From Ministeria vibrans ATCC 50519 (taxonomy: Eukaryota; Protista; Filasterea): DNA of 37,504 bases. The translations under genes were made by a program, and so were the position numbers. Below the pieces are notes generated by a model that worked only from the letters and a program-made list of their open reading frames with translations, was not told where the DNA came from and searched no databases. The stretch spans positions 1 to 37,504 of the forward strand of contig CALSCP010001392.1 of the NCBI GenBank assembly GCA_943704425.1, in the 5' to 3' direction. Within the stretch, counting starts at the first letter, position 1, and every line of letters begins with the position of its first letter. Shown here in pieces: positions 7,997-30,424 of this stretch.

Positions 7997-8783
7997 TTAC
8001 ACTGAACTGTCTTCAGCGGCCGCAGTGATTTTGCTGCTGTTGCGGGGATGTTTGGCGAGCTTATCCATCATCTCCTGGCACACCTCCTCCGTCAGACACC
8101 CAAAACACCACGGACGCCCCTCGCGCTCCTTGAACTTTACTCCGTCAAGAGACAGAGAACACTTGCAGCACTTGAAACACTATTAAAATGAAAGAGAGAG
8201 AGAGAGAGAGAGAAAGAATGAGGAAAGCGGGAAACACACGCACACACATATAATAGTTATATGACTCTTTGTGTATTGATATCACATATGTAATAATAAT
8301 AATAAAAATACAAGCTTACCGTCGGGTGAATTTTTTGTCCTTTATACTCCAGATACCTACAACAAAATAATAATCATTCACGCACACACACACATACACA
8401 CACACACATACACACACACACATACATATACACTTTCTCACTCCTTTCTCCCTCTTTTCTGTCGTTTCGTACCACCCTGATAACGGCTCACTACAGAGAT
8501 GGCACTTTGCTTTACCACACTACATAGAAGCACAAAAACAGTCGATGAGCTACACTCGAACGGCTTCAGGCCTCTATCGTTCCTCGTCTTACGTCTGGGT
8601 GAAATACATCGCCATTGCGCTCAACAAACATTCCCGACTCGCCAAAATCCTTTCCACACTCGGCACAGACAAAACACGACTCGTGAAACACGCCCGTTGC
8701 TGTTTTGCATGTCGCCCCGCGCGTAATGGGCTGCTTACATTTCGTACACGTTTCTCTATATGGGCATCAAACATGACAATCAT

Positions 8784-8874
<91 letters not shown>

Positions 8875-9412
8875 AAACACACACACAAACAACTGTTACC
8901 TCTTCTCATTGGTTGGCTCTGGTGTAGTAGTGAGTACGTGCGATGACTACAGGACAAGAGCCGCTCAGTACACAGCACATCACGTAAAACACAGTCACAG
9001 GTTGTTGTCTCTCTCTTTCTCTCTCTCTCTTTACCGCTCGCCTCTGTCTGTCTGGTTCCTGTCTTTTCGTCGCTGCTGCGCAAGTGTCACAGAATATTTT
9101 GCCTGATCGTTCGACAAAGGCGCCTAAGGCGTACGGGCAGCAGAGCACAGCGAGAAAGAAAAAATGAGCGACGAGAGAAAAAAAAAAAAAAAAAAAAAAG
9201 CATTGCAGTTGGAGAAAGAAGAAGAAGGAGAAAGGCAACGCACCTCTTAACTCAGTAGAGCAATTTACACATTTGAAGCAGTCGGGGTGGAAGAAGAAGC
9301 CCATGGCCTCGACGTTGGTCCGGCCCAGGTCGGCACGACACGCAAAGCACTTTCCGGCAATGCACTGGCAGGCGGCCATGGGCTCCGAGCATGTGTCGCA
9401 AAAGGTGGGCAT
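7997..9412 (-). CDS. LIM-domain protein with 3 LIM domains
   Basis: Spliced exons give CFAC..HPDCFKCVNC..CDTC, then CTKC..HESCFVCAEC..HPDC, then CHLC..HPTCFKCCKC..CFGC. ATG at 9412, TAA at 7999-7997, canonical in-phase introns. Confidence 0.88.
8785..8866. repeat. (CA)n microsatellite in intron
   Basis: Perfect CA run inside an intron of the LIM gene. Confidence 0.95.
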
Positions 9413-21779: not shown

Positions 21780-24763
<2,984 letters not shown>

Positions 24764-24988: not shown

Positions 24989-27900
24989 ATGGCGCTCCAC
25001 AGAGCCGTTGCTCGAGGTGACGTTTCCGCGACTGAAGAGCTGCTCAAAGAGGACATGTCTCTTGTCGATGCCCGCGGCTACTATGGCGAGTCCGCTCTCC
25101 ACGGTATGGCGGTGCACGGACGGCAATGGCATTGTCGCCCGGCTCACAATTTCCACTTTTCAAGCGCCCTTTCCTCTCCCACGCTCACTGCCGCCTGCCA
25201 CACTCCTCCCTTGCCGCCAATCCGTTTCATTTGCCATCCAGCTGGCTCTTCCATGCTCTCTCTTCCCACCTCGCCTCCCCCTTTTTTCTCCTTTTTCTCC
25301 ATACAATCTTTCTTTTTCTTTCCACCATGACACTTTTGCCCTGTCTCCGTCCTGTCCTTCCCTGCCCGTCCCAACGCAGCCAGCCCGTCTTTCCCGCGTG
25401 CCTTTGCATCCCCTGTGCCTCGAATGAGCTCCAGGCCCCTCGCGCGCTGCTTTTTGCTTGCCAGATGGTTTTGCGTCTGATGCTGTGTGTACTTGTGTGT
25501 CTATAGCGGCGTGCCTCAATGGACACCCAGAGTGTATTCAAGTGCTGATGCGCGGCGGTGCCGATGTCCAGAGCGAGAACAACTTTGGCTTGTACCCTAT
25601 CCACTATGCGGTCGTGTCGGGGCACCTGGTGTGCGTCCGCATGATGATTGAAGAGTTTGGAGCCCTTCCATCCGTGTGTGTCAACAAACCCAACACTGTG
25701 CTGCACTCGGCAGCCGAAAGTGGTCAGGAGGAAATTGTCCAGTACCTTGTCGAAGAGTTGGAAATGGAACTCGACGTCCCCTCCGAGTCGGGTCTCGACG
25801 CCGTCGAGCTGGCATCCCAACACGGTCACACCGACTTGGTGGCCTACTTCAAACAGCTCCAAAAAACTCGTGGTACTTAGATATTAAAATCTTATTATAA
25901 TGAATTCGTTGGGTTTATGCATATCTTATCGCTCTCTGTCTTTTGTAGAGCATCGAAGAAAAACCGATTCCCGGCGCCCTAGTGCCAACGAAGGTACAAT
26001 TAGTTTTTTCTCCTTTCTTTCCCTCTATCCATTTATTTCTTTCTTCCTTCTTTCTCTATATCTATTTGTTTTCTCTCTCTATTTATTTATTTATTTCTTC
26101 CTTCTTTTATTTGTTGCTTTCTCCCTTCTTTCTCTCTCTCTCTAATTTATCTCTTTCTTCCTCCTCTCACTCTCAATACCTTTCTTCTCTATTTGTAATG
26201 CAGACGCTCATCCGCCTTCCAGGGACCACAACGACGACACAGATCTCAAGTGGTCCATCTCGCCTGCCCCTGATTTAGACCGATCACTACAACCACGTAA
26301 TTACAAAAAGAACTTACTCGTCCTTGCCACTCATCTTGTTTGCTTCCTTTTTTTTTCTTTCTCCCTCTTCTCTCTTCGTGGGATAGTAATGCTGAGTCAA
26401 ATGGCAGAGCAGCTCGTGGAACAACAGTGGGAGCTTGATTTTGCCTTGGACCAGGTGCGCGAGATGTCGGTAGCGCCACACGGTGGCTCGGGCGTCGACC
26501 CACTGGTCTTTGCAGCCCATGCGGCTGAGGGTACGCTCAATCGCGCGCAGGACGCCATTCGCGAAGCCAACTCGACGGTCGCTGATGACTTTGAGAATGT
26601 ATTGGCTCATCTTGTGAAGCAGCGCAATGTCGCACGGCAGCTCTATGAGACAGCTGCGCGTACGCTCCTGGCGAAGGCTGCCGAGCAGTTGGACGCGCGC
26701 GAACGAGAGCTGCGCAACGCTTTGCTTTTGTTGGAGGATGCACTGGAGAAGGTCGTCATGACACCATCTGAGATTGTCCTGCGCGAACCCCTCCAGTGGC
26801 TGCTGCAGACAACACGAAAGGACGACGTTGGTGGCGGCAGTAGTGGGGTTGGTATGGATGATTGCGGAGAGCTGGCGACAACGTCGCCGAATGGCAGGTG
26901 TGATGGTATGATTGGCAATGCCGATGCAATGCGGCCCCGCTTGCCACCGCCTGTGTCTCCCATCGACATTGACGCTGTCACACAGTCGCTTGAGCGCCTT
27001 GGCGACTTCAATTCCGCGTCGCCCGCAGCTGCATCCGCCGGTCCTGTACTTGAACGTCTGTACACCACGGCGTACGCGACTGGGCTGGCGCTCCGTGACG
27101 ATTTGGTTCAGTTGACGTATGCGCGCGCGGCCATCCATCGACACCAAAGGCTCATGGCCTACCTCGACGAGTGGCAGGTGTCGCCAGATTTTCACCACAT
27201 CAAGCTGATGCAGACCGAAGTGGCTCGGCTCAACGATCTTGTCCTAGTCCAGTCAGAAGAGTTCAATCAGACACGCTTGCGTGTATCGCACCTTATTGAA
27301 AGCAAGGCGCGCAGCAAGGCGAAGCATTCGGGCAAGGGCGCAGGGGGAGCACTCCTCAAGCGCAAGAGCTTTGTCGAGCAAGACATGGCACGCCTCAAGG
27401 CTGAGAACGAGTTGGAGGATCGTTTGACGCATTTGCAAGCGCTTCGCGCGCAGATGCACGCTGGTGCTCAGGTGATGCACGATGCACTGGGTGATCTCGC
27501 GTGCGTCGCGCAAAATGTCTTCCCGGAGCTTCTGCACGACGCCGAGTTTGGCAGTTTGCTTGTCAGCTGGCTTGAGCACGACGGCCTTGTCACCATTGGC
27601 CGTTCTCTCGATGACTTTGACCAAGTCGATCTGAGACGACCCTTGTCGGGCGCCGCCAGTCGTTTCCGTCCCACCTTTTCTGGCTTTTTTGCCGGCGAGC
27701 CATGCTTTCTGCGTCGTCTAATCATGGCCGATGCGCGCTCACAGCGTCTTGTTGCCAGTCAGGTGGCCGAGATGCGCAAACTGGGCCAACACCCTAACAT
27801 CAACGTGACACAGGCACTCGTGCATCCGTCGATCCTGTCGCCGGGGCAAGATGCCTCTTCGCTCGCCGGTGGACGGGTTCTCTACTTTCAGGTGGACCGT

Positions 27901-30115
27901 CCCATGGGCGGCACACTGCGCGAGTGGCGTCTGCGCAACCGCTCTCCACCGGCAGGTGTCTTGCCCGAAATTGCCACGCGACTCTTGCAGGCACTTGAGT
28001 ATCTCCATGTGGTGGGCGTGCCCCACGGCGACCTGTGCCCGGACACGGTGTGGATGACGCGGGCAGGCGAACCCATCATTGGCGACTATGACCTTGGCAA
28101 TGATCAGCGCGGTCGCGTGCGTCACTTGCAGCAAAGCTGTACCACCAACTCATACATGTCGTGCTTTGTCGCTCCCGAGTTGCTCTACGGCGGCTCTCAG
28201 GCGCTGCCCACCCACGCGTCGGACATGTACTCGTTTGGCGCGACTCTGTACTGGCTCGTCTTCACGCGCAACCCGCCCACACCCACCTCGAAAATGATGC
28301 GCCAGAGCCGCAACAGTAACTCGAGTGATTGGAATACAACAGTGAGTCCGAGTCGCGCTGGCACCTCGGGATTGTCGTCGCTTGCGACCTTTTTTGGTCT
28401 CAAGGGTACAACGCCACTGCAACAGGCGCTGCTTATGATGCTTCACCTCGACCCATGGACGCGACTCGCTGCCTCACAGGCATTGCTCCAACCGGTGTTT
28501 GCGCCCGCTCTCAACGCCCGACCGCAAATCAAAGTGTGGCGTGTGGCCAAGGACCGAGTAACAGAGGCGCGCGAGAAGCAGCAGTCGCTTCGCCGAATGC
28601 GAGAACAGCTGCTTGGCGAAGTGCGCTTGATTGGGGTCGAAATTCAGCACTTGCACAACGCAGTGACGGTGAACCAGGAATCGCTACAAAAGCTCAATGA
28701 GCGACGCGAGGTCCTTGCCGAGCAGCTTAAGGACGTGCGCTACCGCGAGGCCAATGTGCAAGCGGAGCTGGCCGATGTTGCGCGCAAGTTTCGCGAGGCA
28801 CGTGCCACCCTCTCCGACGGCCTTCTCATCACTCTGCCACCTATCTACTGGTGTGGACGGGTCCTTTCCATGGCCGGCTTTGTACGGCGTGTCGATGTCA
28901 CTAGTACACTCAAACCAGCAGTAAGAGAACGAATGAGAGAGAGAGAAAAAAACAAAGGAGGGAGAAAGGAACAAAGTGATAGAGCAAGAGAGAGAGGAAA
29001 CAAAGTGATAGATAGTGAGAGGGAGAGGAGGGAAAAAGAAACAAAGTGATAGAGCGAGAGAGAAGAAATGGCGACTGACCTTCTTTTGGTTGCTGTTGTT
29101 ATAGATGGAATGGGTGATGAATCGAGGCAAATCGACGGTGGGGAGGGGTAGTCGCAAGATTACGGTGGTGCGAGTGGAGCGCATTGAGAATGCATTGTTG
29201 TGGCGCGACTATGCGACTCGACGAGGAGTTATTGTACGCTCACTAGGCACCATCAAGACCAACGAAATGAACCTTGCGCCAGCGGCGCCGTCGAGTCAAC
29301 CGCACCACACGCCCTTGCCGCCACTGCGTGAACACGCTCAAGGCTCTGAGACACCCTTGTCATGGGGCGTTGTGTCGCGTCGTCCGCGCGCTTCCAGCAA
29401 CTCCTCGGTCAACAGTGCTTCGTCAAGTGTCGCATGGGCTCAGGCGTCGTCGGGCTCGGTCACAAGCAACACCCTCGCAACACCCTCGCCCTCGCCCTCC
29501 GTATCATCGTTCAGCGCGACATCGGCTCAGGACAGCAACGGTGTAGCGTCGGTGCCGCGTCGTCTACCCATTCGACCCGCACTGGCGACTCAGCCACTGG
29601 CGACTCACGAGACCCTTGGTATGTCGATGTTGCAAGAGATGGAGGCCGAAGAGCACTTTTTGTTCCATTGCATCACTGGTCGCGACAGCCTTGACAATGT
29701 CATGCACGGCGGTCTATGTCCTCGAAAAATGTTTGAGAACGAAGGCGGTGGTGTGTCGACCGGCAGTGAGCGGTCGCTGGGCAGTGGTATCTACTTTAGT
29801 GAGAGTGTGGAGCTCGACGATGATAACAGCACGGCTGCAGAGCGACGCAACGACGACGACGATGACGACGACGAAGCGACCACATCCAATGTGGTGCTGG
29901 TATCGCGAGTAGTGCTTGGGTGCACGTTTGCCACAGAGGGCGACCATCCACAGCTGCACCGCCCGCCCTGCATGCAAGGGCACACACACACCCCGTGCCA
30001 TCACTCGCGCTTTCACTCGGTCATTGGTCTGCCCAACGACTCGCGCTCCAATCGCCAGTTTGTTGTGTACGAGCGCACTCAGGCCTATCCGGAATACGCT
30101 GTCTATTTTGAGTAA
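24989..30115 (+). CDS. Ankyrin-repeat / coiled-coil / protein-kinase-like / coiled-coil / tankyrase-like PARP catalytic domain fusion protein, 6 exons
   Basis: Exons at approximately 24989-25103, 25507-25872, 25949-25993, 26203-26296, 26387-28920 and 29105-30115 join through GT-AG introns with no frameshift or stop. ANK motifs: GESALH, GLYPIHYA, NTVLHSAA. Kinase motifs: HPNI, LEYLH..HGDLCPDTV, IGDYD, APE, SDMYSFG. PARP motifs: ERIEN..LW..Y, LFH, GSGIYFS, HSVIG, QAYPEY. Confidence 0.8.
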
Positions 30116-30314
30116 CACGTTTGATTGTATTCTAAACAATAATTATTATGATTTTATTAAAGACGTCGGAAGAAATAAAGTAAAAACGTCGAATCAAGAT
30201 CTGCACTCAATGCCAGACCAAGACAGTATCAAAACAAAAAGCAACACAATACTTACACCGTAGACTTCTACACGAGAATCTCCCATACTTTGACGTGATT
30301 TTGACTAGGGAGTC

Positions 30315-30424
30315 TAATAAAGTGAAAGTATAAAAGACATCATAATAATTATTGTTAATAAAGTGAAAGTATAAAAGACATCATATTAATTATTATTAAT
30401 AAAGTGAAAGTAAAAGACATCATA

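Follow-up and report, generated by a model that had tools for sequence, protein, structure and literature searches.

A probable ankyrin, kinase-fold and PARP gene of Ministeria vibrans with degenerate catalytic motifs, related to a family of kinase-PARP fusion proteins

As a rule, phosphorylation and ADP-ribosylation are the work of separate proteins. Among described systems, Tankyrase-1/2 (PARP5a/b) combine N-terminal ankyrin repeats with a C-terminal PARP domain, whereas in ILK N-terminal ankyrin repeats are followed by a pseudokinase that acts as a scaffold. RIPK4 and ANKK1 also combine a kinase with ankyrin repeats. PARP13/ZAP and PARP9 keep a PARP fold with a broken catalytic triad, which presumably serves as a binding or regulatory module. 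Here, we describe a locus on contig CALSCP010001392.1 of the filasterean Ministeria vibrans ATCC 50519 (assembly GCA_943704425.1; 29.7 Mb, 2,860 contigs), within an analyzed stretch of 37,504 nucleotides (nt) referred to below as the window. Positions 24989-30115 of its forward (+) strand probably constitute one six-exon gene, whose product of about 1,387 residues would be a divergent member of a kinase-PARP fusion family acting as a non-catalytic scaffold or regulator. Five ankyrin repeats would be followed, in this order, by a disordered linker, a long stretch of helices, a kinase fold, a hairpin of helices and a PARP domain of the tankyrase-like type. This differs from RIPK4 and ANKK1, in which the kinase precedes the ankyrin repeats and is active, and no PARP domain is present.

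No published description of kinase-PARP fusions was found in the searchable literature. A broad survey of PARPs reported that ankyrin-PARP combinations arose several times and did not mention kinases (Perina et al. 2014, PMC4245714), and a 2026 preprint on fungal PARPs described no kinase-PARP fusion.

The ankyrin, kinase and PARP frames all lie on the + strand between an ATG at 24989 and a TAA at 30113-30115. Recomputation of all junctions returned the frames, the five GT-AG introns and the phases that the initial annotation of the locus had given, with a coding length of 4,164 nt (1,387 codons) distributed over six exons. Introns 1 to 4 are in phase 1 and intron 5 is in phase 0; every donor begins with GTA and every acceptor reads YAG. 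Exon 1 (24989..25103) opens with the start codon, encodes ankyrin repeat 1 and the beginning of repeat 2, and ends in phase 1 at the donor GTATGG, while exon 2 (25507..25872, donor GTACTT) carries repeats 2 to 5. Exon 3 (25949..25993, 45 nt) and exon 4 (26204..26296, 93 nt) are mini-exons, entered and left in phase 1, that would encode a hydrophilic linker. Exon 5 (26387..28920, 844 codons) covers helices, the kinase fold, a helical hairpin and the lead-in to the PARP domain, and exon 6 (29105..30115, 336 codons including none of the stop at 30113-30115) covers the PARP catalytic domain. Within the window, exons were GC-rich and introns pyrimidine-rich or AT-rich, and the GC content by codon position in the large exons agreed with coding sequence. 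All searches and structure predictions were run exon by exon, on single exons or frames.

The join between the kinase and PARP exons was analyzed across intron 5 (28921..29104, + strand; 184 nt, phase 0, GTAAGA..TAG), which cuts the N-terminal part of the PARP fold. For this purpose, residues from the two exon ends, the final 45 of exon 5 and the initial 54 of exon 6, were aligned separately to homologues. In the public protein P0026 they mapped to residues 1555-1591 and 1593-1644, respectively, in P0007 to residues 1908-1932 and 1935-1983, and in other kinase-PARP proteins the two exon ends were placed 9 to 19 residues apart. With 45 residues taken from each exon end, collinear placement (0 to 19 residues apart) was observed in 18 of 20 uninterrupted kinase-PARP proteins; when the exon 5 tail was shuffled 100 times, the count averaged 1.65 and never rose above 7. 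BLASTP of the kinase frame also aligned its residues 806-852 to P0026 1555-1599, directly ahead of the PARP domain of that protein. The family consensus PxYW ... D.T ... RxEN..LW spans the junction, and the first strand of the PARP fold, together with the conserved PxYW lead-in, was located by alignment to kinase-PARP proteins at the end of the kinase exon (28834-28920, + strand). The PARP fold therefore begins in the kinase exon, and the stop codon met at 29049 on reading through the donor would belong to the intron; the read-through tail up to this stop is of low complexity and aligned nowhere consistently. Judged from these alignments, the predicted splice joining both exons is well supported, far beyond chance.

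The architecture is not unique to this locus, and fusions that combine kinase and PARP domains with N-terminal repeats of other kinds occur widely. Within public data, a kinase lies upstream of PARP in 16 of the 150 nearest PARP clusters. Pfam was run on 13 of the 16 and confirmed Pkinase plus PARP, as did a later search covering five more. Their N-terminal modules comprise leucine-rich repeats (LRR) in P0072 and P0065, FYVE in P0007, DUF4116 in P0041 and ankyrin repeats in P0026; none was recognized in the others, and P0020 and P0142 carry no recognizable N-terminal repeat domain. P0026 encodes ankyrin repeats, Pkinase and PARP within a single frame of 1,826 residues on a genomic contig. The initial annotation had recognized no characterized protein of this architecture, which holds for the searchable literature but not as a claim of uniqueness. 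Named sources of the family are transcriptomes of the choanoflagellates Salpingoeca punica and S. kvevrii, of Apiculatamorpha (Rhizaria) and of the diplonemid Lacrimia, with the remaining kinase-PARP proteins coming from metagenome or Logan contigs. P0072 from S. punica (LRR-Pkinase-PARP) derives from an assembled transcript and thereby shows that single messenger RNAs encode such fusions.

Exon 5 of the window matched 16 family proteins by BLASTP with E values from 5e-14 to 4e-3 (14 of them at ≤2e-5), and exon 6 matched 17 family proteins with E values from 4e-21 to 9e-10; no public kinase-PARP protein exceeded about 25% identity in the kinase or 40% in the PARP domain. With P0026, P0072, P0007 and P0041, the window shares a collinear arrangement of pre-kinase helix, kinase, PxYW lead-in and PARP domain, a non-RD kinase with DFD or DYD, and the motif RPPC..C.H in PARP, the presence of these elements on one polypeptide depending in the window on predicted splicing. 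Kinases of the family are non-RD (HxD), have DFD for DFG and lack a classical Gly-rich loop, and most of those aligned retain the VAIK Lys, the catalytic Asp, Lys and Asn and the DFG Asp. The public proteins differ from the window copy in that most retain the catalytic Lys, Asp and Asn together with the PARP Glu, and in their N-terminal modules.

The same genome contains at least four further loci, C2221 (L023), C1131 (L024), C1443 (L025) and C2121 (L026), each with a kinase and, 3' of it on the same strand, a PARP domain. These paralogues retain HCDVKPEN, DFD and REF(I/V)VY. They are closely similar to one another, have in common an intron at kinase profile position 112/113, and look like a recent expansion. 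In C1131, a single frame of 1,259 codons fuses an armadillo array to the N-lobe of the kinase, so that its N-terminal module differs from the ankyrin repeats of the window. Two other loci were noted in this genome. At G000:C408:38182-47241 on the + strand (L031:182-9241), 12 Ank_2 stretches precede a C-terminal divergent pseudokinase (HGN, no DFG), which together with its pre-kinase helix is related to the kinase of the window; no PARP exon was detected downstream. At G000:C2175 (L027:5259-8450), a frame of 1,064 codons with Kelch and multiple EGF modules lies just 5' of a PARP C-terminal exon (L027 about 8736-8963) with its Glu intact.

With regard to the kinase exon (+ strand), Pfam detected Pkinase (PF00069) in the 886-codon frame 26389-29046 with E=7e-17 and 62 bits against a threshold of 31.7 bits, the match covering profile positions 69-263 only. 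Pfam, AlphaFold2 and Foldseek placed the kinase fold at about residues 402-700 of exon 5 (about 27592-28488). AlphaFold2 confidence was 75-95 across residues 430-700, and the Foldseek matches were protein kinases. The model further predicted helical regions at residues 2-124 and 217-397, a disordered stretch at residues 125-215 and, confidently, a helical hairpin at residues 712-814. Helices before and after the kinase are consistent with the "coiled coil" labels, and any oligomerization through them is putative. The best sequence match among solved structures was the TYK2 pseudokinase domain, with RIPK1 among the better ones, and all kinase matches were weak and generic. A word-indexed protein search with the whole kinase frame found nothing and, with the kinase region, only three weak, unrelated kinases; no relative was found in JGI metagenome contigs scanned with the kinase frame, and no usable match in the ESM Atlas with the N-terminal 420 residues of exon 5.

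Alignment to the family and to canonical kinases showed that all motifs in the kinase motif region (27676..28185, + strand) are degenerate or atypical. At the VAIK position, which reads CFLRRL, Lys is replaced by Arg (codon 27712), and no GxGxxG loop was found in this alignment. The catalytic loop reads HGDLCPDT (28024-28056), retaining Asp, with Lys replaced by Cys and Asn by Thr. At the DFG position the sequence is DYD (28075-28098), in which the Asp is kept, and APE and the helix-F Asp are also retained. The set of catalytic residues of a eukaryotic protein kinase is thus incomplete in this copy.

A full HMMER scan with the PARP exon returned 191 relatives at E≤1e-3. When the family profile was compared with solved structures, tankyrase catalytic domains scored best (E=1e-28), followed by PARP15 and PARP12 (near 1e-23) and PARP1 (1e-10), with the PARP domain of ZAP also among the matches. 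The ordered parts of the AlphaFold2 model matched PARP15, PARP12 and tankyrase-2 in Foldseek with a probability of 1.0. On profile and model evidence, the identity of exon 6 as a PARP (ARTD) fold can be regarded as secure. The tankyrase-like label of the initial annotation was borne out at the level of the family; by its own sequence alone, the window domain shows about the same closeness to PARP15 and PARP12 as to tankyrases. Its nearest PARP relatives are from choanoflagellates (S. macrocollata, E=3e-15; S. punica, 40% identity).

Along exon 6 on the + strand, the conserved strand VERIEN..LW lies at 29174-29203, the family motif RPPC..C.H at 29957-30022, and the structural core motifs GxGxYF and YPEY are retained. 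The triad His is at 29666 in HFLFHC, where Cys replaces the usual Gly (LFHG in the family), and the triad Tyr at 29792 in GSGIYF (G.GIYF in the family). The third triad position, at 30056, is Gln (CAG) within NRQFVVY, where the family has Glu in REFIVY. The triad is therefore H-Y-Q and not the H-Y-E of poly-ADP-ribose-forming enzymes. Across the 150 nearest PARP clusters, Glu occupies the third position in 119 and Asn in 2, and Gln was found solely at this locus. The domain also contains an acidic insertion at 29810-29890, devoid of Cys and His, and, at about 29240-29629, an insertion rich in Ser, Ala and Pro that exceeds the length seen in relatives by some 85 to 90 residues. An intron hidden in the exon 6 insertion was considered and rejected: the segment has a GC content of 0.63, is open over 130 codons and in part aligns with the family's own loop.

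A PARP-domain tree of 142 rows, built with the IQ-TREE quick search, was poorly resolved. The window PARP formed a long branch (1.28) in no supported set and was not placed inside the tankyrase clade. The label "kinase-linked" required 18 changes on this tree, compared with 22.4 in shuffles, so that a single origin of the fusion is neither supported nor contradicted.

The window protein shares with Tankyrase-1/2 the position of the ankyrin repeats and of the PARP domain as well as the GxGxYF and AYPEY motifs, but it has only five ankyrin repeats. No exon matched SAM in Pfam at E≤0.1, and the place that SAM takes in tankyrases, between the ankyrin repeats and the PARP domain, is filled by a kinase fold and helices. 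According to the family-profile alignment, in which the zinc loop of tankyrase corresponds to the variable region of the family, the acidic insertion occupies the loop of the zinc site (CHCC), and the ligands of that site are absent. Given the missing SAM, the insertion in the zinc loop and the Gln in place of the catalytic Glu, the protein predicted here is not a tankyrase.

Regarding the N-terminal part, Pfam matched Ank_2 in the exon 2 frame (25458-25877) with E=1.4e-25, and Ank and Ank_2 weakly in the frame 24989-25120. The Ank_2 match in the former begins at residue 17, that is, at base 25506/25507, which is the predicted acceptor of intron 1 (25104..25506, + strand; 403 nt, phase 1, GT..TAG, pyrimidine-rich). 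This intron divides ankyrin repeat 2: exon 1 encodes one repeat and the start of the next, which resumes exactly at the exon 2 acceptor. Between exons 2 and 5, a 514-nt interval contains two islands with a GC content of 0.56 (45 and 93 nt), in surroundings of 0.29-0.39; the introns flanking exon 3 have values of 0.29 and 0.31. The lengths of both mini-exons are multiples of 3, and exon 4 is open in the predicted frame only, its acceptor being CAG (26203) and its donor GTAATT (26297). In a blind splice-signal scan of 25860-26389, a simple cut-off was passed by four donors and four acceptors. Each of the three predicted acceptors was among these, as were two predicted donors; the third predicted donor, at 25994 (GTACAA, after AAG), fell below the cut-off. 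The ATG at 26389 in the kinase frame is preceded, at a distance of 2 nt, by a TAG acceptor with its polypyrimidine tract, which is what an internal exon would show. Furthermore, one uninterrupted frame of 3,020 codons in the paralogue C408 encodes an ankyrin array together with a pseudokinase of the same subtype (BLASTP E=1e-10), and this frame holds the best non-self ankyrin match of the genome plus one of the better kinase matches. On the basis of predicted splicing, it is quite likely that the ankyrin exons belong to the same gene as the kinase-PARP exons. Of the single-gene claim in the initial annotation, the kinase-PARP join was thus upheld (18 of 20 collinear, against a mean of 1.65 when shuffled), and the ankyrin-kinase join is plausible but unproven.

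Several observations weigh against the predicted gene and its product. No homologue was found for mini-exons 3 and 4, exon 3 shows no bias in GC content at third codon positions (GC3), and Pfam PARP (PF00644) was sub-threshold on 29105-30112 (E=1.4e-3; 18.6 versus 26.7 bits). Reading through the exon 2 donor meets a stop codon two codons on (TAG, 25878-25880), directly followed by ATTAAA at 25883-25888, and the kinase frame has its own first ATG at 26389. Given the ATTAAA and the independent ATG, the ankyrin part might be a gene of its own or give rise to a short isoform without the kinase. The locus would then consist of an ankyrin-only gene (exons 1 and 2) and a kinase-PARP gene starting at 26389, with the GC-rich islands as 5' untranslated exons or promoter elements, which would suit both the absence of an ATG from the mini-exons and the family members P0020 and P0142. 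We consider this arrangement unlikely, given that the frames are just 508 nt apart, that each island has a length exactly divisible by 3, is open solely or chiefly in the frame that the model needs and is flanked by acceptors of the internal-exon type with polypyrimidine tracts, that the kinase ATG follows such an acceptor by 2 nt, and that both C408 and P0026 have ankyrin repeats and this kinase type in one frame. The ATTAAA itself could have arisen by chance in an AT-rich intron, or it could act as the signal of a short isoform that consists of the ankyrin part alone.

The non-catalytic nature of the protein faces objections of its own. The kinase retains its catalytic Asp and the DFG-position Asp, and the loss of activity is read from motifs only; Glu-to-Gln mutants of PARP1 keep mono-ADP-ribosylation, and many PARPs that lack the Glu are active mono-transferases. 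The product could therefore be an active dual enzyme with atypical residues, that is, an unconventional kinase (HGD Asp, DFG-position Asp and APE retained) joined to an H-Y-Q mono-ADP-ribosyltransferase with the His and Tyr of the NAD site intact, which would modify ankyrin-recruited targets. This appears rather improbable: the VAIK Lys and the catalytic-loop Lys and Asn, kept in most aligned family members, are all replaced, no other member of the 150 nearest relatives has Gln where the Glu belongs, and Cys stands in place of Gly after the triad His. The same degeneration of both centers, the two insertions within the PARP domain and the long branch in the tree might otherwise reflect relaxed constraint in a decaying, non-functional copy of the family, either a unitary or a duplicated pseudogene. 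Such decay is very unlikely in view of uninterrupted frames of 844 and 336 codons, splice sites that are all intact, the retention of core motifs in both folds with AlphaFold2 cores of high confidence, and a coding-like GC content by codon position in the large exons.

We thus favor a single gene for a divergent kinase-PARP protein, which, since both catalytic centers are degenerate, would not be a dual enzyme. For the same reason, the proposal in the initial annotation of a signaling or defense hub linking two enzymatic chemistries found no support for this copy. The ankyrin repeats would recruit or bind partners, and the pseudokinase with its flanking helices would mediate assembly, possibly with active paralogues. 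As the NAD-binding His and Tyr are kept, the PARP-like domain would be a module for binding NAD or ADP-ribose, or at most a weak mono-ADP-ribosyltransferase. The nearest functional analogues may be ILK and either PARP13 or PARP9. ILK would be the closest analogue of the N-terminal half, but it has neither a PARP domain nor long helical segments, and the kinase matches, being generic, revealed no specific relationship in sequence. PARP13 and PARP9 pair their PARP fold with CCCH zinc fingers and WWE or with macrodomains, and compared with them the window PARP retains His and Tyr, only the third triad residue being altered.

A kinase hard-wired to a tankyrase-type PARP domain behind interchangeable repeats would be a new signaling design. 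To this family, the locus adds an ankyrin-bearing form and a natural pair of pseudoenzymes, with both centers decayed and both folds kept, which could reveal non-catalytic functions of the family. The N-terminal modules (LRR, armadillo, ankyrin, DUF4116 or FYVE), the multiplication of the family in this genome and its scattered occurrence in choanoflagellates, the closest unicellular relatives of animals, as well as in Rhizaria and diplonemids, prompt a broader idea, which is speculative and probably does not hold: repeat-kinase-PARP fusions could form an unrecognized class of eukaryotic sensor-effectors in which ligands bound by the variable repeats control a non-RD kinase and a tankyrase-type ADP-ribosyltransferase, the window copy being a dedicated regulator or decoy that assembles with active paralogues via its helices. 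At a practical level, exon-aware reading recovers multidomain genes that frame-by-frame calling splits.

Upstream of the gene, the first coding exon of a divergently oriented glycosyl hydrolase family 47 gene (GH47, alpha-mannosidase-like; Pfam E=4e-24) lies at 24011-24487 on the - strand. The divergent intergenic DNA of about 500 nt up to this exon makes the ATG at 24989 a credible start. In public records, the locus is represented by the metagenome scaffold ENA ERZ23497041 scaffold_16995 (1,457 nt), which is 99.9% identical to 28921-30377, with one base differing, and begins precisely at the first base of intron 5. The sole public protein from the locus is a PARP fragment of 332 residues, a frame call on this scaffold. 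With respect to repeats and composition, positions 26000-26141 of intron 3 consist mostly of TTTC-rich tandem units of 21 to 33 nt. The coding strand of intron 5 is rich in purines (pyrimidine fraction 0.21), a bias opposite to that of the other four introns, and contains a 19-nt unit twice (28939-28976). About 200 nt 3' of the stop codon, an AT-rich tandem repeat with a 41-nt unit occurs in 2.1 copies at 30315-30400 (95% match).

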